A stretch of DNA of 64,000 nucleotides from Klebsormidium nitens (GCA_000708835.1 DF237138.1:1-64000); one strand, 5' to 3'. Shown: positions 1 through 12,230, counted from the first letter of the stretch. The notes: generated by a model from the letters alone, not told the origin. Translations and numbers: made by a program.

Positions 1-258
1 GGCAAGAAGTGTTAGTCTAGAAGCTTCGGTGCTCGGCCGGCCATAAGCTTAGTCTAAAAAGCTTATCGGACGGTTCCCAGGCGCGCGGTGCACGTGGGTC
101 TTTATCGAACGGTCACTCGGTGAAGCAGTAACCTGGACACGTGGCGTGTAGTGATTCAATAAGTCGATAGCGTATAATAACGGACGATGCGCGGCCGCGA
201 GTTCAGCGCGCAGCCGGGAGTCGGTGCGCAGTCGTGCCGTTACAGTTCAAGTCAATAA

Positions 259-3097
259 TTGATTCAGTTAAATTCAGTTAAAAACGAGACTGTGACCTTA
301 AGCGCCTTTCTGAAAGCCTGTGAAGCTCACCCCGACTGGCTGAATCCAATCAGAAGGGAAGTAGTTGCTGAAATAGAGAAATTCTGGACTGCTGAAAAGT
401 GTCTCAGCATCCAGCTGCATTGCAAGGTAGGCCACAGCGAGAAATACCAGCATCTAATCAACCTATCTAGCAAAACCTACAACCCTGTCAAGAAATAGTG
501 GGAAGGAAAAGAACTCTTCCATCCTGGCAGCCAAGTGTTCGTTCCCAAGTTTAGATCCAAGAATGAGGTAGGAGGTCTTCGAACTGAAATCGCAGCGGAA
601 ATTCCTCTCATCCAGGACGAGCAGGGAACTGCTTGCTGGACTGACTTGGAAGCTCTGATTATAGAGACAATCAGGCAAGAAAGAGCAAAAGGGTACTGTC
701 AAAGCAAGCGGCTGATCCAAGAGCTTCAAATCTGGCTGCACTGGGGCGGTGATGCTGCTGGCTGGCTCAGAGGCATTAAGCATTCTAAGTTCGGTTTCAA
801 ACTAGTGGGGGGTGGCAGGGTTTGCAGTCAATCACCCCGGAATCTTAGAACCATCCTGCTCTTTGAGGGCAAGGATAATTACGAGAATTATAATGAATAC
901 ATGCAACCCTTCTTCCCTGTCATGCGCAAGCTGCGCCTGGAGGGACTGATCATTGGCGGAATCCGGTACACATTCAAACAGACAATAGGGGCAGATTACG
1001 TCCTCCTAGCTGAAATCCTAGGTCATGCGGGGCACAGCTGCATACAGGGCTGTGTCTTCTGTCTAATCTTCAAGAAGGATTACGGGCGGCTAATCGACAA
1101 TGGAGGCAAACTTGAACCAGTGCGAGCAGAACCCAGAACCCTTGAGATGGCAGCTCTTGCTGCGCACCGCCCCCTGACCACAGGGCCTGACGTCAAGTGT
1201 AACCACTGCGGCGAGGCCTTCCCTGACCAGGCCGCAGTCCTAGCAAGCAAGGCCCCCGAAAACCCCCAGGCTTACCAGCAAACCCATGCTGGTCAAAAGT
1301 TTGGCTGCCCCCCCCTCTTCGACTTCCAAATCACAGACATCTTGCTGTGCATTCTCCACACCCTCCTCAGACTCTCCGCGGTAGTCTTCAAACGCACGAT
1401 CACAGCAAACTGCGACACCCAAGCCAAGGTTGACGCCATCAACTCCTTCATCAAGGAAGCCCATCTGGGCTGCAAGAAAATCAAACTGAAAAAAAAAGAC
1501 GCCCGCAAGACCAAGGACACCGAGGACATCAACTTTATTGGCAGGTGAGCTCACCTGCTGGTTTGCCTTGCATTGCATTGCCCCCCTTGCATTGCCCCGT
1601 GCATCTGACTACAGCACTTGCATTTTGCAACCCCCCTTTTGCCACTCTGCTTCGTGCATGCCTGCCTGCTTGTTCATCCTGCTGATTCATCCTCTACTGC
1701 GCTGCGCTGTCCTGCTTTGCGCTGCGCTGTCCTGCTTTCCTGCACTCCTGCTCTCCTGCTCTCCTGCAACAAAAACATAAAGAAGTATTAAATCGAATAC
1801 TTTTATGTACACTGCAGGGAGGCCAGGGTGCTCATGCACCCAGACATGTACAACACGCTGCTGACCATCGCCATCGAGGACCCTGGGAAGAGAGCTTTGA
1901 ACGAGAAAGTGTGGGCGGGCCTGAGCACCTACAACTCAGAGCTGCTGAAGCCCATGCTGAACCCGGCAGACGCAGCAGAGCGCTTGGTGAAAAGCGGTGT
2001 TGTTCAGGAGAAGGGAGTGGGTTTCCTGAGAGCATTCTCAGACGTCGCTGGGGTGGAAAACGCAACACTCTACTGTCACATGGCGGTCACCCACCTGCCA
2101 GAGATGGTGCGGGACACGGGGGTGGACCTGTCGGAGGTGTCCCAGCAAGCCCTGGAACACGCTCTGAAGCAGGTCAGGTCCACATCTCAATCTCCTCGTC
2201 CTCCTCCAGCACCTGCAGACAAGAAAGAAGCACTTAGCTTTTCTTTCAATGCAACACCCTGAAGAAAAACCTTTCTCCTTTGAAACTGCTTGCCCCCTGG
2301 CTGGTCAGCGATCCCAAGTCGTTGAGCGGTGACACTTTCTAGAGAGCAACCCCCTAATAGCCGGCCAACGTACGCCCTGGCCCGCACGTTCTGGGGTGCC
2401 CACATCAGAAGTGTCCTATTACAAGATGCAATTCTACTTTGTTGACGATTTGATTCCGAATTTGTTTCTTTTGCAGGGCAAGAGCGACATGCGAGACTTC
2501 TCCAACAAGCAGCTGATAGGCGAGCACATGGGGTTGGGGAGAAATCAGCAGGTGATGGCAAAGGAGCGGGAGAGAGTGCACTTGGAGCAGAGGGTTGAAA
2601 TGCCCCTGTCCCGCAATGTCAGAAGGCAGCTGGGCGACGGGTCGAAGGAGATAGACAAAGCTGTCGAGCGGGCAGAGAAGAAGGGGCTCCTGGTGAGCAA
2701 AAGTCAGCAGCAGGTTGACAAGCTGGTAGCCAAAGGGAAGCAGAAAATGGACGAGTTGGTGGCGGGGGTGTTGGAGGACAGGCTCACCTTGCCCCCTATC
2801 CCAGAGGAGGATGCAGCGCCTGCAGTCCCTGCGCCTGCGCCTGCTGCGCCTGCGGAGATGGAGGCCCCCTTGCCTCTCCCCTTGGCAGCAGCTGAAGGCC
2901 TCGAGGTGCCGGCGATCATCCTCGAGACAGCACCAGGGGACAGCACACTGCCATCCCCCAGCACCATCGGGTGCGGCGGCGATGCTGGGGCGCGCGGGGC
3001 GGGCAGGGGCGGGGCAGCCAGGGGGGCAGCCAGGGGAAGGGCCAGGGGGACGTTCATAGGTGGCCGGAGAGTACCTAAGAATGCGAGAGCATTGTAG
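259..3097 (+). mobile_element. Transib/RAG1-like DDE transposase gene, probably pseudogenised. Exons about 259/535-1544, 1818-2172, 2477-3097; in-frame TAG at 496-498
   Basis: The spliced product (phase-consistent GT-AG introns 1545-1817 and 2173-2476) shows the Transib/RAG1 core motifs in order: IWLHWGGD (D1, cf. KWGxDG), GADYVLLAEILGHAGHSCIQGCVFC (D2 + CxxC), CILHTLLRL (cf. LH), FIG|REARVLM (cf. GNxARxxx), TLYCHMAVTHLPE (cf. YFHKTLAHVPE), LSEVSQQALEHALK (E, cf. SEEAQEARNK). ORFs 259-498 and 535-1548 are in the same frame, separated only by one TAG. TIRs were not found; the left end may lie outside the window. Confidence 0.8.
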
Positions 3098-3187
3098 AAG
3101 TTAGAAAGTAAGAAAGTAGATGGTAAATTAGACAAGAGAAAGTGCTAGGAACTCAACACTCTCGTGCATGACGAACATGAACTGTGT

Positions 3188-4200
3188 TTAAAACCACCAA
3201 TTACCTGGATCACCCCTGTCCTCCCTCCATGACTCATCCTGCCGCTCTTCTGGACGCAATGCGAAGTAACTGTGCTGCATTTCCTCCCTTCTCAACCTGT
3301 CTGCTGTCAGTCTAGCCTGATCTCCATGATAAGTCTCGAGCAACAGCGCCTCTGAATGCTCGACCATGGACTTTGTCAACCGAGAATTTGCCGCAATCAA
3401 AAGCCCCCTTTGCCAAATCCCGGAACTTTGCCTCGACAAAAGGCCAACCCTCTGCTGGTTCTTGCATTGAGTTGGCCCTGTTAATGACCCCCCGGATTGA
3501 CATTGAGATCCAGCCAAAGGTGATGCTAACCCTCGAACCAGCTACTTTGCTCTCTGTATGAACTGCTCGGACGGGGGGCACTACCATGACCATCTCCCCA
3601 CTAGAAAAGATCTTGCATGATGAGTAACCCCTTTCTGATTCAATCCAATGGAAGCAGCAGAGCGTTTCCACCGCAGAACAGGTCTCCAGCAGCCTGATGT
3701 ATGTCTTTACATTGGTGGTCTGCCACTGGCCCTCCTCATACTCAGACTCGAAGATTGAATGGAAGGCATCAAAAGGGACAGGCGGTTCTGACGACCAATT
3801 CACCCCACTGTGCTCTGAAAAGGTCAACCGCCTGAACATGCATTTCCTCCACCACTTCAAGTATTCCCTGTCGTCGATCATGTGGATGTGGTGGTTTTCA
3901 TGATTGAACGCCAGCACTGTGTCAGCCCACTTAGCATTGCACTCCCTACAGCGCAGAGACTTCCCAGAAAGTTTCTGCCCATCCTTAGGACAAAAGCGGA
4001 AAAACTCAGACCCCGCCCCAGCAGTGAGCTTGTAAACCCCCTCAAGTCTCAAAATCTTCTCTTCTTCAAGCTCACGAGACTTAGCTGCAGAGTGCTTGGG
4101 CCGCTTCCTGTCGCAGAACCGGCCAGTCTCCCTCATCTTGCGCTCCCCCCCCGCCATGCAGGTTGCTTTTGCCAAACAAGCAGAGCGCAGAGCGCACAGC
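3188..4200 (-). pseudogene. Transposon-associated second gene convergent with the transposase: zinc-ribbon plus putative JmjC/cupin (DSBH)-like domain; frameshift near 3404-3408; 5' exon(s) uncertain (possibly 4376-4576)
   Basis: ORF 3312-4259 contains FCPKDG..CREC, LAFNHENHHIH..YLKWW and GEMVMVVPPVRAVHTES..SRVSITFGW. Removing one base from the C5 run at 3404-3408 joins it to ORF 3188-3517 (LAKGLLIAANSRLTKSMVEHSEALLL...). The first ~35 codons of the listed ORF derive from a 7-mer tandem repeat and are probably intronic. The domain call is by eye only. Confidence 0.5.
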
Positions 4201-4256
4201 CCACAGCAAGCAGCCCACAGCCCGCAGCCCGCAACCCGCAGCCCGCAGCTCGCACA
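4192..4256. repeat. Short tandem repeat (CAGCCCG/CAGCCCA)n
   Basis: cacagcccacagcaagcagcccacagcccgcagcccgcaacccgcagcccgcagctcg is read directly in the sequence. Confidence 0.85.
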
Positions 4257-5594
4257 CAACAGGCAACTCTAGGCAGCTCTAAGCAGCACACAGAGGCAGA
4301 AAGCGGAAAGCTGAGGTGATAGCAATGAGAGGTGATAAGACAGGCCGACCTTTGACACGAAGCGACCCAAGCTTGCTAGGTGATGTGACATGCACAGGTT
4401 TGCCCTGCTAAGCGCGCCCCTTTCTCGAGGCTTCTGACCTTGCCGAGTGAGCTTTTCTGCTTATTTGGCAAATTCCTGCGATCAAACCATGGGGGACCAT
4501 GTGAAGATGGCGCAGCCAAATCCTTAGAGGCCAATGATTTTTTTTGACCAGATGCAACGGTGCGCCATCTCAGCATGGACCCTGGTGACAGGCCGCCCTT
4601 TCAAGAAAGATTTAGATATTTGCTCGTGCATGCTCCCGCCATAGGTCGATTCAGCACGTGAAATTTTGGACAGCGCTTCGTCAATGACTACCCTTCGTGC
4701 CTGGCGATTTTGACGGCCTACCTTGCGCGCAGGGTAACGTCCTCCCTATAGATTCAAATTTAAAACATGGTGCGCTCCAGGTGTTGTGCGACTACCAAGT
4801 TGCCCTCTGAAGGTGGTCCGCAGGCCGGTGCCTCCTTTTCACCGGATTTTCCCGCAATTATCAAACGGACGGCTCAGATCTCGTGTCTAGGCTGTCTCCG
4901 ATCATCGGACGGTGAGATGTACGGGGACCGGCCGCAGCCTAGGCTGGTTGTGAGTGTGGCACTAGGACTATAATTCCAACATGCCGCCGTCAAATATCAG
5001 ATACGATCAAAAGGACTGGTGTGAAGGGTTCTCTAGTGTGACTAAATGATTGTGCGTACGTGCATGCTTCTCATCCTTTGATTTGCCGAAATCAAACGGG
5101 AGCCTAGGGTGAGCTATTCAATGATCCGCTTATAGGCTGCAAGCCTGGCGCGTTGATATGCGAAGCTAGCTACCTTGCATGATCGAAGCGCGGGCGGCCG
5201 GACGGCAAAAACTACCTGGCACGGCATATGAGTTGGAAGCGGGCGGCGGCTAATTGATCTGCAATGGATGACAATGATCATGTCGAATTGTATATCGTCA
5301 CATAACATTGAAGCCGTTGCTAGCTTATCGACTGGCTTATCCAGCCTATGCATGCATGATCATGGCATCATATGCGTGCGCGGCACATCGCGCGTCCGAT
5401 CAGTAAGGAGTCATTTGCCACGTCATGCATTTGGCGGCCACGTGACCAGGGCCCGACGTGTAGTAAAACTGTTATTCGTACTCCCCTCACTAGGTCTGCG
5501 TGGTGCATCCCCTGCAAAGAATATGACGATGAAATCTCTCATAAAATCTACAATCCGCCCAAATGATATTCGAAGCACAACTAACATGGGGCTA

Positions 5595-8500
5595 CTAGCC
5601 CTGGCCGTGATTGAAGTCGTAAGCAGTAAGTGTGTGATCCGTATGCGCACCCACAATCTTTGTCATCCCAGCTCGCACACACAATAGCGGAGCAGTACGG
5701 CCAACCCCTGCTCCGTCTCCAAGCCCTTTCTTCGCTTCGTCTCCTCCGCTGTGCGACGCATCGACCCAAGCTTCCCTCGGCCTTTTCCGTGGAAATGAAA
5801 GCTGGGCCGTAGAAGCCGAGCTAGTTTCTGAACCGCGCAAACCTCTCTCTCCTCTGTCTACTTTCCCCTCGCTGGACAGAGTCGACAACGTGTCGCCTAC
5901 CTTCTCAAGCTGGGCACTACTTTTTCCCGTTAAAGACCGTAAAGTCCGACCGTTCCCCGCATCAAGTATTTGGATTTCCCCGGCTAGATTGGCGCTCACA
6001 ACCAAGCTGGAACTATACTGGGGGCGGTGCACGCTGGAAACGGCTCGGGCATCTGTTCGCGACCACAGGGGTTTTGCGTACCTGCATCAGGATGCGAGAA
6101 GTGCGGCCGTGAGTCATCTAGGTGTCTTTCAGAACCAGTTCGTCCAGTAAAGAGCGTGCTTGGCGGGAGTGGTAAGCTGGAAACGGCGCACGTCTGCTCT
6201 CGACCAAACAGGTTTAGCGTACCTGCATAAGGATGCGAAAAGACTGCCATAATCATTCTGTCCGTCCGTCGGTTCCAATTTGATCCAGTAAAGAAACAAG
6301 CATGTACTGGCGAGAGTGGTAAACGGGAATGGCTCTCGCGTTTGCACGCGACCAGAGGGGTTTCGCGTACCTGCAGAAGCATACAAATAAGCGGCCGCAA
6401 AACTGTCTGCGGATCCGCCAGTAACCATCTGCTGATTACCACAAGACAGACGCGCTCTAAAGAAAAACCAAAGGAGGACGGACTTGGATCCTCATATCAA
6501 CATTGTCCGCAACACCAGAGCGCAGCAACGGCCGAGCGCAGAGAGAAAAGACGAGAAAAGGAGGCTACATGACCGGAATGCGGAAAAGGTAACACAGCGA
6601 TCCAGGTTGTAGCAGTGCGCAGAAACGAGACACTGAAATTTCTGATAAGGCTTCAACGAGCAATGCACACCGAGGGCTCAGAAAAGGCTGTCGAGGAAAT
6701 CTGAGGACCGACCCAGAACTAAGTTCCGCCCCAAGGGTGACTCGTCTGCAAATCATTGCAAAGTCGCTGCGGAAATCGCTCACCTGACGTCCCAACACGT
6801 TAGCCCTCGGGGTGTTGCAGCAAACACCATGGAGCGGGGAGCGTCGAGATGTGCACATGTCACCTCTGCGCATAGAAGACAGACATCGATGAAAACCTTG
6901 GCCGGAGATAGCAGATTTGCGACGTACTCCTCGAAAAGAAGCACAGGCTGCCGTCCGGATGAGCCACCTTTTCAGCCTTTTCAAGAGACTTAAAGATCTG
7001 TGACCAAAGGGAATATGCAATTTATTTCCACATTCACCTTGGCCAGGCTGCTGTGCAGGCTCCATGGTCGCGAGCCTCCGAGAATGTTCTCACAAACGCA
7101 GGCTGCCATTTGGAACACAAGTATCGTTCCGCAAACTCTGTCGCATGATCCAACGCCAGACAAAGATCCAGACTAGGTCCAGAGAAAGGTAAGCTTGCGC
7201 AGGGTGCTAGGACAGCTGGAGTTGAGATTCCCGAGGCCTTTCCCGAGAGCGTACGCTGGCGCCCAGAACACATACAGCCTAGCGGATTCAGTCAAATTGT
7301 TTTCAAATCATAACTCTAAAGTATAGCGGCCTTGCCTTGTGCGGGATGCTGTGGCAGCAGGTTCGCGCTGCGCTCCCCCGAGGAGGCTGCCGAAAGGCAC
7401 AGGCTGCCGTCCGAGGATCCGGTGAGAAGAAGGTCGTATTCCACGTTCAGGGCCACCGTCGTGAGTGCTGCGCTTGAGTGGGGCCTGCAGGTAAGGCAAG
7501 TTTTGTGTCTTTCGGAAATGGACATATCAAGATGCATCTCAAGATACCAAGTTCGCGGCGACTCTTGTTGCCGAGCTCAGTACGCGTCAGATTGTGTAGG
7601 AGACTGAACTTGTCGCCGAGCATCACAGGCGCCAGAAGGTTCCGGAAATTTTGCCACAGCAGAATCCGGGGCTTAACGAGACGGCAACCTCCACATCAGC
7701 AGGTCGACATGAAAGTCTTCGTAGAGAATCGCCCAACCAGTGGGCATCGACTTCTTTCTTGACTCAGCATAGCTTTTGTTTAAGGTGTCAGCTCCGAAAG
7801 CGACATGGCTTCATGTCCCAGAAGCGCTAGCGCAGTCTTCGGCAGGATGCAAATTTGAATAACAGGTTCGCATCCGCCCCCTTGGAGGAAGGAATACATC
7901 TCGCACTGATCGCAGTACTCGGTATCTTTCAAAGCGACGGTGAACAACCTCCAAACAACCTCAGACGCCGGCGTGATAATGACCAGTGGCCTCCAGTGCT
8001 GGAACATTTCTATGAGAGGGCCTTATGAGGGTTAGAGTGAAACTGGTAACTGTGTTTTCAATCCCCCTTTCGACGAGATCTCGAGGACTCGATGCATGCC
8101 TGATAGGAGTTAAAGCTTCGGCTGGAGACAAAGACCAACGACAGGATTTCTCGCGCTGGATCTGTCAAAGCATGAGGGTTTAACGGCTTGGATGCCTGTC
8201 TCAGAATGCTCAAAACAGAAGGCCGAAGACAACAGCTCTTGCTCAAATTTCCGTTGAGGTGTAAGAGCTTGAAGGGGTGGGCATCTACCTGAAAATGCTG
8301 GAAAACAGACTGCCGGAGACAACAACTCCCATTTCAAAACTAGCAAAGCGTGCCAGCGTGAGGTTTTGTGCCTAGCTGAGAATGCTCAAATAACAAATAC
8401 ATCTAGAATGGCTCTCGCTTGTGCTCTGTTAAAGTTTGCGAGCTTGAGATTTTGTCTGCCTACCTGAGAATGCTGGTGATGCTCCCGCTGAAGAGGTCGT

Positions 8501-11500
8501 ACAGGCGGAGGGTGCCGTCCTGGCAGGCGGCGGCTAGGTCGGTGTCATCGAAGCTGCACGCACGGAGTTCAATGGCAGTTTGACACTTCCTCCGTTCTAA
8601 ACTACGGTAAAGCGGGCAAAAGCCGGAGGAAGCAGGCAACTATCGGAGCCCGATATCCAAACATTCACGAAGTCCGCTTGAGGGGCATCAGGATCGAACT
8701 GAAGCGTCACGACGACGTCAGCTCGAGCGAGATGTCGAAGAAGAGAGCTCACCTTATCGCACGCACCCGCTGACCATGGCCCCCTAGAATGCGGAGGAGG
8801 CGGCACTGTCCAGGTTCCGACAGCCGCTTCCATAGGACCACGTCGGCCCCCGCTGCAGCCGCCACCTGGGTCAAGCAAACCCACATGATGAAGCCGGATG
8901 ATCCAGCTGGTCGGACTACTCGGGGTTCAAAACTGACGGTAACCAATGAGAGCGCCATCTTGAAACAACTTTGGCTCGGCTCACCTCTTCAATAGCGAAA
9001 ATTTGAGTGAGCAAGTTCACGTGTCCGGCAGGTTATGATCATGATGACCCCCCGCAAAGCCAGCGTCTTTGTTTCAACAGCAGCCCGCAGACTCTGCAAG
9101 TTACTGCTACAATGTCACTTCCTATTGAAAAGACACGACACGCGACACGTCCGTTTTAGGGGCTCGTCCTTCGAGTCTTTTACATGGAACATGTTTACGG
9201 AGTTGTCCGCCTAGCTTTTCAATTTCAGGCATCTGTGAAGAAAGGGTCAAAGCTTTCCTTTATCGTCGACATTACAGAACCGCTTTTCAGCAAGTTTTCT
9301 ACTCTGACTCGCCAGTGAAACCTTCGCTTGTTTCAAAGCGGAGCGCGAATTGGCCCACCTTGTGCTGGTCCAATTGCAGGTCAACCACTGGCGAGCGGTT
9401 GGGCGCTTGGAGAGTGCTCAGGCAGCGGCTGCTTGAAAGACTCCACAAGCGCACCGTCTGCAAAAACGGCGAGTGACGTCAAAGTCGTCAAGCCGGATGG
9501 TGTCTGACAGTCACGCCAAGGATTTCTGATCGAATTACGTTCGAGAGAACGTACGGTGTGGCGACTTCATCTGACAATAAAGCTCAGAAAGGGGTTCGGT
9601 GGTTCTGGACTTATGAGATACTGAAACTTACGGGTACACAACAAGCTACTCTAACCTTGATCCACTTGCGACACAGATACCACAGCCACAATGGATCTGG
9701 ATGACCGGACGAGCGAGAGCACACCTCTGGTTACGACCGACGTGGTATGGTCGACGTCAAGGTGGCTTGCGCAGAATTTAGCAAAAGAAACTGGGACGAA
9801 AAGCAACGGTGGAAAAGAAATATTGAAACGTTCCACAGCGAATTAGCACTGGGCCACAGCACAACGGCTATCGAGGAGAGTAATGCAGCCTCGATCAGAT
9901 GCTCTGACCTGTTAAGGAAGTCACGCGCGAATATGTACTTACAAACTGCAGTAGTTGAGATCGACTGCCGTGTGAAAAAACCGTACGGTCCGCTTTATCA
10001 TACTAATCGACAAAGAAGAAGCAGGAACCTTTTTAACGACCTTAACCACGGACTACCTCTCAAATTTAGCTTTTTGTTCCGGGTTGCCAAAATCCTTGCT
10101 TGAATTTCTCAAAAGAAACGCTCCCCAAACATGGTCTAACGGAGATGTTCAGAAGACCAGTCCTCACTGTATCAGAAGATGCGCTGGCCACAATATCCAG
10201 GTCAATCGCGCATGCGTTAACCCTGCACAAAAAAGAAGCAGAGTGGTTTGGACACATTGTATCTGAAAAGATAAGCCAAGCAGACTCGTATTAGTTCTGT
10301 CCAATCGGCTCAGTCGTCCTTTTCGACCTTCCTGATTTTGACCCAGAACAGGCAGGCTGCCTTTGGAAATCCAACCCGGATGCATACAAAGATCGATGCC
10401 AACTGTAAGGTGACGAAGCGGCCAAATCTTAGAGACCACGGCTCTGGTTGCCTGGTATCCCAAGTATGATGCAATACCCTCACGATTTTTGTAGGAGAAG
10501 TAGCTTCGTTTCCGAACCGCAAGATCCTGTGTCTGCCCCAAGAACCGGGACATCAGGACGTTTATTTCGACCAACTTGAAGCAACAGCAAACTGAGAGCC
10601 AAACGGAGCTTCTGAGTCTACTTCTTCACATTCTTGTTTCTGAAAGTTTGATTCTGAAAACGGATCTCTTGAGCGGGCAAGTTTTCTCCAGCTTGGGCTT
10701 TTCGTTGTTCCAATTCTTCCATCACCTTTCGAAATTCGAGAACAGGTGCACTTAATGCCAGAACAACGTCAACCAACATGAGTGATTCTATGTTTGGCTC
10801 CATTGAGAGGCCCAAAACAAACTTCCTCAGGAAACCAAGCAAGAGACATCTGTACCTTTTGGAGTGGCCTTCAAGCGTCCGCAATTGGTAGTCTCCCAAC
10901 AGGAGGCTCTTCCGATGCTCCTTGTCAACAAGGCATGCCTTCCAGTCGGGTGGGTCCGCCATCCCTCTTCTCGGTGGATTCTGAGTCCCACCTGGTCCTC
11001 CGCCATACCTTCCATTGTACAGGGTTTGCCAAAGGCCGGGGGACGCCTGGATAGATGCACGCCTAGGATCACAGAAGTCTCGTGTCAAAAAGAAAATTAG
11101 AACGTGGGGTAAGGCTACAAAAGAATATAGGGGGCAAGTGGCCGACAACATTCCAATCCATGAAGCAAGCAGAAAGTTTTTTCAGGAAATGATACGTTAC
11201 TTTGATGAAGACTTCGAAGGAACTACGCATTGCAAAGTGAGAGCTGCAGAGACCTTGGTACTGTGGGATACAAATGGATTTTTAGGCTTGGAGACGTCAA
11301 AGACACGTCAACAAGACTGATGGTTATGGTTATTTGCCACGTCTTCATGCCCTGGTTCTTTATGCCCTGACAAAAACGTAACTTTTTGTGAAACTTTTCA
11401 TAACAGTTTGGTTTGCAAAGTGGTGGTACAGTCCGCTGGCTTTCTGCAAGTCAGTCTTGATTGCGAATAACTGGAGACAATACCATGAAGATCTGCTTCT

Positions 11501-11963
11501 GAATCATAGCTACATTTTCAGATCAGTCCTCAACTGTACGCTGGGCTGTCACTCTGATACAATCAGAAGCTTGATGTTCAAACTTGCCTGTCCCCCATTG
11601 TAGCAGACCATGCTCCAATTCTGCAGTTAGTTCCTCGACTTTCATCACTTCAACTAACTGTTGCTTTGTGTTTTAAAGCTTCATCTGACGAAGCTTCCCT
11701 GTCAAAGATTGAACTGGAGCAGTAATCCAGCATAACTGATACGAGTGAAGTTTTTTCCGATGTTGTTACTTTGACAGCAATGGGTGGACTGCATGAAAAG
11801 GGAAAAACAGCCGCTTGACAGCAAAGCAATGCCACGACCATGAGAAGCGGCCAGCTCACCAATCACTAGACACCGCAGCGCATGCAGCCACCTGGGTTGC
11901 ACTGAGGCGTTTCAGGATGTGGTCCAGGCAGTCGAGGGGAAGAGCAGACGGCCTCTCCTTCAT
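5595..11963 (-). CDS. F-box/WD40-repeat protein. Supported exons: 11963-11860, 11062-10856, 10222-10168, 9457-9359, 8865-8753, 8553-8464, 7484-7336, further uncertain exon(s) near 7.0-7.1 kb and 5.9-6.0 kb, last exon ending at 5595
   Basis: N-terminal F-box LPLDCLDHILKRLSATQVAACAAVSSDW. WD repeats: LEGHSKRVNACAIDLDIVASASSDTTVRLW, LGGHGQRVRAISFDDTDLAAACQDGTLRLYD, LLLTGSSDGSLCL. C-terminus CVRAGMTKIVGAHTDHTLTAYDF. Phases are consistent for the first seven exons; 3' exon structure is incomplete. Confidence 0.88.
6036..6380. repeat. Degenerate ~145-bp tandem repeat (about 2.5 copies) in an F-box/WD40 intron
   Basis: The motif gaaacggc...cgacca.aggggttt.gcgtacctgcat.aggatgcga...ccagtaaaga...ggcg.gagtggtaa recurs at about 6036, 6180 and 6325. 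Confidence 0.75.
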
Positions 11964-12230
11964 GCTGCAGATGAAGAGTTTCACTGTAGCAGGTCAACAG
12001 CGCTTACAGCTATCCTCAGCCATTGAATGTCTTTCTTTGTCAACACAGCATGATTAATTTATTACCTGTTTAATTACTTTACCATGTACTGTCATGCAGT
12101 GCAGAAGCCGAGTTTTGGCCGGCCCTGGCCGGCGTCAAGAGCTTACAAGAGGCACAGGTATGCACGGTGAGGGAACACCGGGCCAATAAGAAGAACTTCT
12201 AACCAATCAAGGCCGGTAGTGAGTACCGGC

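Follow-up and report, generated by a model that had tools for sequence, protein, structure and literature searches.

The 64,000-nucleotide stretch of Klebsormidium nitens DNA analysed here (GCA_000708835.1, DF237138.1:1-64000; hereafter the window) carries near its start two genes that face each other tail to tail, a transposase gene on the plus strand and, on the minus strand, a gene for a second protein which we refer to as the partner. Open reading frame (ORF) pieces of the plus-strand gene lie at 259-498, 535-1548, 1828-2262 and 2396-3097, the minus-strand ORFs are at 3312-4259 and 3188-3517, and the two stop codons (TAG at 3095-3097 for the plus gene, 3188-3190 for the minus gene) are exactly 90 bp apart. 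These coordinates confirm the convergent arrangement, with stops 90 bp apart, that had been noted in a preliminary description of the window. On the basis of sequence comparison we interpret positions 245-4952 as a dead, 5'-truncated copy of a family of two-gene cut-and-paste DNA transposons of K. nitens, with the following features:

245-4952, no strand assigned: decayed, 5'-truncated transposon copy, with its left end and approximately 1.3 kb gone
259-498, plus strand: remnant of the transposase upstream of its core, ending in an in-frame TAG (496-498) through which relatives read
535-1544, plus strand: transposase exon with catalytic Asp codons at 751-753 and 994-996, C(2)C at 1051-1062 and a second CxxC at 1198-1209
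1545-1817, plus strand: intron 1 (GT..AG), the removal of which reproduces KFL_001890010
1818-2172, plus strand: transposase exon with H(4)H at 2077-2094 and the catalytic Glu codon at 2155-2157
2173-2476, plus strand: intron 2 (GT..AG), lacking in the other copies L001, L004 and L005, which read straight through
2477-3097, plus strand: last transposase exon, encoding a helical region and an Arg/Gly-rich tail, with its stop at 3095-3097
3188-4157, minus strand: partner gene of approximately 322 codons, ATG at 4157-4155, stop at 3190-3188, one-base frameshift near 3372
4158-4935, minus strand: non-coding DNA 5' of the partner gene, in which copies share conserved blocks at approximately 4519-4568 and 4797-4850 and CCGTCCGAT at 4903-4913
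4936-4952, minus strand: right terminal inverted repeat (TIR), the minus strand reading 5'-CACAACCAGCCTAGGCT

Joining the exons 535-1544, 1818-2172 and 2477-3097 across the two GT..AG introns gives exactly the annotated protein KFL_001890010, which in a protein search matched part of the plus-strand gene with 100% identity. Family alignments and the spliced product of the window identify the conserved columns as a first Asp within HWGGDAAG (D73), a second Asp within GADYVL (D154), a C-x2-C located 19 residues past the second Asp (C173-x2-C176), a second CxxC, an H-x4-H (H424-x4-H429) and a Glu within SQQ..E..KQ (E450), the second Asp and the Glu being 296 residues apart. The columns that are invariant in the alignment of the 1818-2172 exon are Y-C-H..H-x-P and S-Q-Q..E..K-Q. 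Across the family the protein is a DDE transposase of approximately 850-950 amino acids.

The decay of both genes, also noted in the preliminary description, is borne out by the truncation, the in-frame TAG and the frameshift in the partner. Homology to the protein of full-length relatives begins only near 277, so that the transposase of the window is without approximately 180 N-terminal residues that relatives possess, and all read contigs of four sequencing runs break at 244/245. On the right, the copy extends to the family terminus at 4952. The partner shifts frame near 3372-3388, whereas every relative keeps one frame. Contigs from runs X1 and X2 represent a relative which is 95-99% identical to the window copy and which has G rather than T at 496 and one base fewer at 3372; being free of both lesions, this relative indicates that the TAG and the frameshift are recent and private to the window copy. 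The region upstream of the partner (4158-4935) shows similarity between copies in all frames and on both strands, by blastn and tblastx, and is therefore not coding.

At 244/245 the element is cut off by an unrelated repeat. Positions 1-244 belong to a separate high-copy repeat, with all contigs breaking at this junction and then continuing differently; its contigs are 3-10 times as deep as those of the transposon in the DNA-like runs and reach a depth of 50-105 in two runs guessed to be RNA. This repeat holds ATCGGACGGT-like motifs resembling the subterminal block of the transposon. Positions 1-120, which contain ATCGGACGGT, were considered as a possible left subterminal region and rejected, as blastn against the real left ends returned nothing and the read contigs make 1-244 a distinct repeat that ends at 244.

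Intron 2 is missing at L001:11105-12028, L004:11828-12808 and L005:12057-13199, where exons 3 and 4 form a single ORF with the same residues at the junction. Its presence in the window and absence from these three copies implies gain or loss of an intron within the transposon family.

Termini, copies and classification of the element

In order to locate the termini we compared the flanks of copies, using loci which encode homologs of either protein and which come from scaffolds of K. nitens and, in two JGI samples, from what is evidently a related alga. Non-coding similarity upstream of the partner begins at one sharp point, 5'-CACAACCAGCCTAGGCT, and the inverse sequence is found upstream of the transposase. 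Two loci, L008 and L009, share 99.6% identity over 4761 bp, and their similarity is lost exactly after ...GGTTGTG, which fixes the terminus to the base. The right terminus of the window recurs in L001, L004, L006, L007, L010 and L012. Element termini have the form 5'-CACAACCAGCC...GTG-3', and complete copies are 5.6-7.5 kb long, with inverted repeats reading 5'-CACAACCAGCC...GGCTGGTTGTG-3' and a 2-bp target site duplication (TSD). An inverted-repeat search for TIRs in the window and four loci gave chance pairs only, such as 132-145/5437-5450.

The copies with both ends well defined, their lengths and their flanking 2-bp repeats are:

L001: 5576 bp, CT
L004: 6264 bp, GC
L005: 7476 bp, AG
L011: 6936 bp, TT
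L012: 7208 bp, TC

All five are thus flanked by a 2-bp direct repeat, and the chance of this occurring by accident in every one of them is approximately 1e-6. L003 and L008, which have degenerate left ends and no clean 2-bp repeat in their flanks, were excluded from this count. The flanks of the five complete copies contain no 5-bp repeat, and duplications of 5, 4 or 3 bp were ruled out because they do not fit these flanks. Inside the termini, GC-rich subterminal blocks (CCGGACG and CCGTCCGAT) are kept between copies; the transposase-side end of one subfamily has three GGACG repeats within 45 bp and the partner-side end has CCGTCCG at 40-95 bp.

Members of the clade termed CMCT (CACTA/Mirage/Chapaev/Transib) have in common the motifs C(2)C and H(3-4)H, ends of the form CA..TG and TSDs of 2-5 bp, and some of them resemble RAG1 in HHpred (PMC12730594). 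CMC elements that end in CAC..GTG and have a TSD of 2 bp are on record (PMC6004678). The Klebsormidium family has CAC..GTG ends with a 2-bp TSD, and its transposase has D, D, C(2)C, H(4)H and E, all in conserved columns. In an ESM-Atlas feature search, the N-terminal core of the transposase retrieved clusters of the RAG1 RNase H/ZnC2/ZnH2 type first (0.95, 186 shared features), and RAG1-related clusters were among the nearest for the C-terminal half (0.84-0.86). Matches to DUF1280 and DUF1258 were below threshold (best E 0.0019) and hint at most towards CMC. A profile of the transposase returned its own family alone from 5.8 billion proteins at E <= 10, and a metagenome scan with a transposase profile found no relative. 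Judging from these features, the family fits the broader RAG1-related CMCT clade and appears to be neither Transib proper nor ProtoRAG. This placement is by ends, TSD and motifs; no sequence-level match to any named member of the clade was found.

The preliminary description had gone further, in reading the locus as a ProtoRAG-like transposon with a Transib/RAG1-type transposase. Transib elements have a 5-bp TSD, a TIR of the form CACAATG-23-nonamer and a transposase of approximately 700 amino acids (PMC1131882), and RAG-like (RAGL) transposons carry convergent RAG1-like and RAG2-like genes inside their TIRs (PMC7204232). A genuine Transib- or ProtoRAG-type element in the green lineage would account for the CAC with which the termini begin, the RAG1-type order of the motifs including C(2)C and H(4)H, the position of RAG1 clusters as nearest by protein-language-model features and, for RAGL transposons, the two convergent genes inside TIRs (PMC7204232). 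However, the TSD is 2 bp in all five well-defined pairs rather than 5 bp; in place of a TIR composed of a CACAATG-like heptamer, a spacer of 12/23 bp and an A-rich nonamer, the terminus CACAACCAGCC is followed by GC-rich blocks, with no A-rich nonamer seen and only CAC in common; the transposase, at approximately 850-950 amino acids, exceeds the approximately 700 of Transib; and RAG1 profiles from Pfam and the PDB gave no match at E <= 10. Furthermore, the RAGL partner is a RAG2-like kelch propeller with or without a PHD finger, whereas the Klebsormidium partner is predicted to be an alpha+beta orphan with a zinc ribbon and has no kelch propeller. We consider this origin improbable. The description as a two-gene transposon and the RAG1-related kind of the transposase (by motifs and Atlas features) are upheld, while Transib proper (by TSD, TIR and size) and the ProtoRAG-like label, given the 2-bp TSD and the absence of a RAG2-like propeller, are not.

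Among named elements the most obvious candidate for a relative is Lanisha (PMC8245031; Repbase Reports 2020; GenBank MT647524), which was put forward as a superfamily of cut-and-paste elements and comes from the moss Ceratodon purpureus. Lanisha also has a streptophyte host, is described as EnSpm-like and is placed in the CMCT clade, and the comparison is by host and description only. An obligate, convergent orphan partner is absent from descriptions of the CMCT clade in PMC12730594 and in the related literature examined, and we propose that the Klebsormidium family is an undescribed, or at least unnamed, two-gene variant of a CMCT-clade DNA transposon.

Several observations concern individual copies. 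L008:692-5450 and L009:1-4760, the 99.6% identical copies, lie on different contigs of one JGI sample, and their near-identity suggests recent transposition in that organism; both adjoin Ty3-like retrotransposon fragments which match each other at 81% and are in opposite orientation. Just upstream of the intact copy at L012 (K. nitens DF237217.1), positions 2487-8342 hold a D5_N primase-helicase gene and a gene with a weak match to KDZ transposases, which may be another mobile element. In the divergent copy at L005, a GCTGACCAGC-like unit is repeated imperfectly, both inverted and in tandem, in a cluster at 11387-11560, within the non-coding DNA that separates the first transposase coding block from the second.

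Inheritance of the partner with the transposase

In the window and at L001, L003, L004, L005, L008, L009, L011, L012 and L013, the gene immediately downstream of the transposase is the partner, and the two converge. Taking as informative those loci at which the sequence past the transposase is available and not disrupted, the partner faces the transposase inside the TIRs in 10/10. At L012 it was called by the K. nitens annotators as a gene of 369 residues. Identity between copies across loci is 40-80% for the transposase exon and 34-75% for the partner, and the two identity matrices, computed over nine loci, are strongly correlated (Mantel r = 0.87, permutation p = 2e-4), from which it follows that the pair has been inherited together since before the subfamilies split.

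The partner is also under purifying selection. Pairwise Nei-Gojobori comparisons gave proportions of nonsynonymous differences (pN) of 0.13-0.20 against 0.60-0.74 for synonymous differences (pS), and dN/dS was 0.07-0.17 for pairs not saturated at synonymous sites. Single stops or frameshifts are present in the partner of the window, L004, L005, L011 and L013, and the partner is intact in L002, L009, L012, P0001 and P0002.

As the gene lies inside the element, is always present, diverges together with the transposase and is under selection, its function is one encoded by the element and it is not a neighbouring host gene. That the partner is an unrelated host gene which merely happens to sit beside the transposase copy of the window would explain the adjacency seen there and nothing else; its location inside the TIRs of every complete copy and its presence at all ten informative loci, at 34-89% identity and co-diverging with the transposase, leave this explanation with practically no credibility. 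The check proposed in the preliminary description, co-occurrence of the two genes in the same orientation within shared TIRs, thus had a positive outcome at 10/10 loci.

L010 is the only locus without a visible partner. Positions 8006-12209 of this locus hold a good left terminus and the N-terminus of the transposase, and exon 3, exon 4 and the partner are absent from the 1.5 kb before the end of the contig; this copy is probably interrupted or internally deleted. A 423-residue K. nitens gene model, KFL_011650010 (P0063), has the C-terminal half of a partner homolog fused to an N-terminus unrelated to it and was probably built across a broken copy.

Predicted structure of the partner

Members of the partner family are approximately 330-370 amino acids long. 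The N-terminus is basic and is followed by a zinc ribbon, an alpha+beta core built around a His that does not vary, and a C-terminal part of three helices. When 1.84 billion cluster representatives were searched exhaustively with HMMER, 52 hits were returned. Those whose source was looked up come from K. nitens, JGI/IMG metagenome contigs and Logan assemblies, except for three long proteins that match over short, repeated stretches, among them a bacterial calcium-binding protein. Neither single sequences nor small profiles retrieved anything from Pfam, the PDB or the Atlas; a C-type-lectin match to the zinc-ribbon region (E 0.0096) was judged to be due to chance.

The partner was modelled with AlphaFold from an alignment of 66 rows, with a predicted local distance difference test (pLDDT) score of 83, a predicted template modelling (pTM) score of 0.71 and pLDDT >90 over most of residues 100-290. 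An earlier model, from 11 close homologs, had a pLDDT of 41 and was discarded. The model consists of a helix at 24-38, a short ribbon at approximately 55-75, an alpha+beta core with a helix at 96-110, strands at 119-122, 140-146, 150-157, 181-183 and 225-227 and a long hairpin (189-203/207-219), and three helices at 238-292. Foldseek found no match in the PDB at E <= 0.001, the best being an archaeal-virus anti-CRISPR protein (E 0.018). VIA-align against 48,161 PDB representatives reached a best Z of 6.4, under the noise level of 7-8 stated for the tool; CYTH/TTM-like chains recur among these weak matches (Z 4.2-6.4) and were set aside as noise. A fold search of the ESM Atlas gave no clear match (TM normalised by the model <= 0.30), and a search of the viral database BFVD gave none at E <= 0.001 (best E 0.0028). 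Judging from this model, the partner appears to be a conserved orphan protein with no recognisable fold relatives.

The preliminary description had drawn attention to three strings in the partner, FCPKDG..CREC, FNHENHHIH..KWW and GEMVMVVPPVRAVHTES..VSITFGW, all of which are found in ORF 3312-4259, and had taken the first as zinc-ribbon-like, the second as His-rich, the third as resembling a JmjC pattern, and the protein as a whole as not kelch-like. The zinc ribbon is substantiated: its pattern, C-x2-[D/H]-x10-C-x2-C, has ligands conserved across the family (C56 in 31/33 members, D or H59 in 34/34, C70 in 31/33 and C73 in 32/32). We also agree that the protein is not kelch-like, as the model contains no beta-propeller and no kelch chain matched beyond a single blade-sized stretch. 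The model has no PHD finger.

The proposal that the partner is a JmjC-like or other 2-oxoglutarate (2OG)-Fe(II) dioxygenase with a double-stranded beta-helix fared differently. It is suggested by a local G-E-x4-P..H followed some nine residues later by [R/K]-V-x-[I/F]-x-F, which recalls what we take to be the distal His and the Arg strand of 2OG oxygenases, and by the conservation of the residues concerned, H200 being invariant (43/43) and R/K209 present in 40/43 members. The predicted fold, however, is an arrangement of seven strands (one long hairpin included) and helices rather than an eight-stranded jelly roll. No JmjC, Cupin, 2OG-FeII_Oxy or Tet_JBP family matched at E <= 10 in searches of Pfam (36 members) or of the PDB (profiles of 11 and of 66 sequences), and the best 50 matches from Foldseek-PDB, VIA-align, the Atlas and BFVD included no cupin, JmjC, AlkB, TET, other double-stranded beta-helix or kelch chain. 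Nor does conservation favour such an enzyme. The His-rich segment is variable, with H86 in 9/32 members, H90 in 14/32 and H92 in 16/33 (28-48%), H200 is followed at +2 by an acidic residue in 25/43 members (58%), H116 has G at +2, and the conservation table of the partner family contains no second conserved His downstream of H200 and no conserved HxD/E motif. The check set beforehand for this reading, a double-stranded beta-helix with an HxD/E...H triad, was run on the model and the conservation table, and neither was present. An AlkB-like reading, prompted by the R-V-N-I-T-F strand, was likewise rejected on the second AlphaFold model and the conservation table. That the partner is a dioxygenase seems to us very improbable, and a model with another fold, the outcome which the preliminary description had itself named as refuting the idea, largely refutes it.

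Candidate roles for the partner

Interest in RAG1-type transposases stems from their place at the root of V(D)J recombination, and dependence on a second subunit, RAG2, is usually seen as special to the animal RAG lineage. The green-algal family described here pairs a RAG1-related transposase with a different partner that is co-inherited and selected, and offers a second natural case for asking why enzymes of this type take on a cofactor. With it comes a conserved protein family without recognisable fold relatives.

We propose that the transposase presumably cuts at the CAC termini and reinserts the element with a 2-bp stagger, and that the partner may act as a transposition cofactor by binding the conserved subterminal DNA, the transposase, or both. 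The maize element En/Spm encodes the transposase TnpD and the end-binding protein TnpA, from one alternatively spliced transcript and in the same orientation. The two systems are alike in that a second protein is needed or carried and in having subterminal repeats near CAC termini, and differ in that TnpA and TnpD share an orientation and En/Spm (a CACTA element) has a 3-bp TSD, whereas the Klebsormidium genes are convergent and the TSD is 2 bp. The likeness of the partner to TnpA is one of proposed role, and the pairing of RAG2 with RAG1 is a looser analogy. A cofactor that binds the ends or the transposase is the most likely role for the partner, with a roughly even chance of being correct.

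An alternative possibility is that the partner protects the element from epigenetic silencing, or otherwise interacts with the host, without taking part in the cut-and-paste reaction. Universal retention and purifying selection would be explained by any function that benefits the element, several CMCT lineages carry accessory genes for chromatin or DNA modification (PMC12730594), and the conserved charged residues D95, R104, R110, H116, E164, H200, R244 and D247 could form an active site. VANC of VANDAL elements and the TET/JBP cargo of fungal transposons are the systems to compare. The fungal elements (KDZ, Plavaka, ESTA and others; PMC12730594) are DNA transposons, some of them of the same clade, with a conserved accessory gene; their cargo, however, is recognisable as a 2OG dioxygenase, and the Klebsormidium partner is not. 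No likeness to known chromatin- or DNA-modifying enzymes emerged from Pfam, PDB profiles, Foldseek, VIA-align or the ESM Atlas, and the 2OG-type metal triad is not conserved. We regard an anti-silencing or host-interaction role as unlikely.

Our preferred reading, held with moderate confidence, is that the window contains a dead copy of a CMCT-clade element, with the partner as a putative transposition cofactor. Several results weigh against it. The transposase matched neither Pfam RAG1 models nor PDB chains of RAG1 or Transib at E <= 10, with single sequences or with four profiles. The subterminal repeats to which a cofactor might bind are modest and differ between subfamilies. No structural match points to a function of the partner, the best fold matches being at noise level. 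Lastly, the search for RNA evidence of the partner was negative, no run recorded as RNA holding this stretch.

A stronger version of the cofactor proposal is that the RAG1-fold transposase strictly needs the orphan partner as a second subunit, just as RAG1 needs RAG2. We put this forward by analogy and as a tentative idea, with perhaps one chance in a few of being right. If true, a two-subunit solution would have arisen independently from a protein fold without known relative, and the convergent two-gene layout would be recurrent, and perhaps mechanistically favoured, in RAG1-type transposases well outside animals. The value of the window in itself is modest, given that the copy is dead, the clade has been described and a transposon-borne demethylase is not supported.

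The two runs guessed to be RNA cover the 1-244 repeat only, save for one contig of run X4. This contig, with a depth of 2.2, joins 1631-1762 to 2094-2203 and skips 331 nucleotides with CT..AC ends, that is, GT..AG on the minus strand. Although a single weak contig, it hints at a spliced antisense RNA that crosses the transposase gene and comes from the same strand as the partner.

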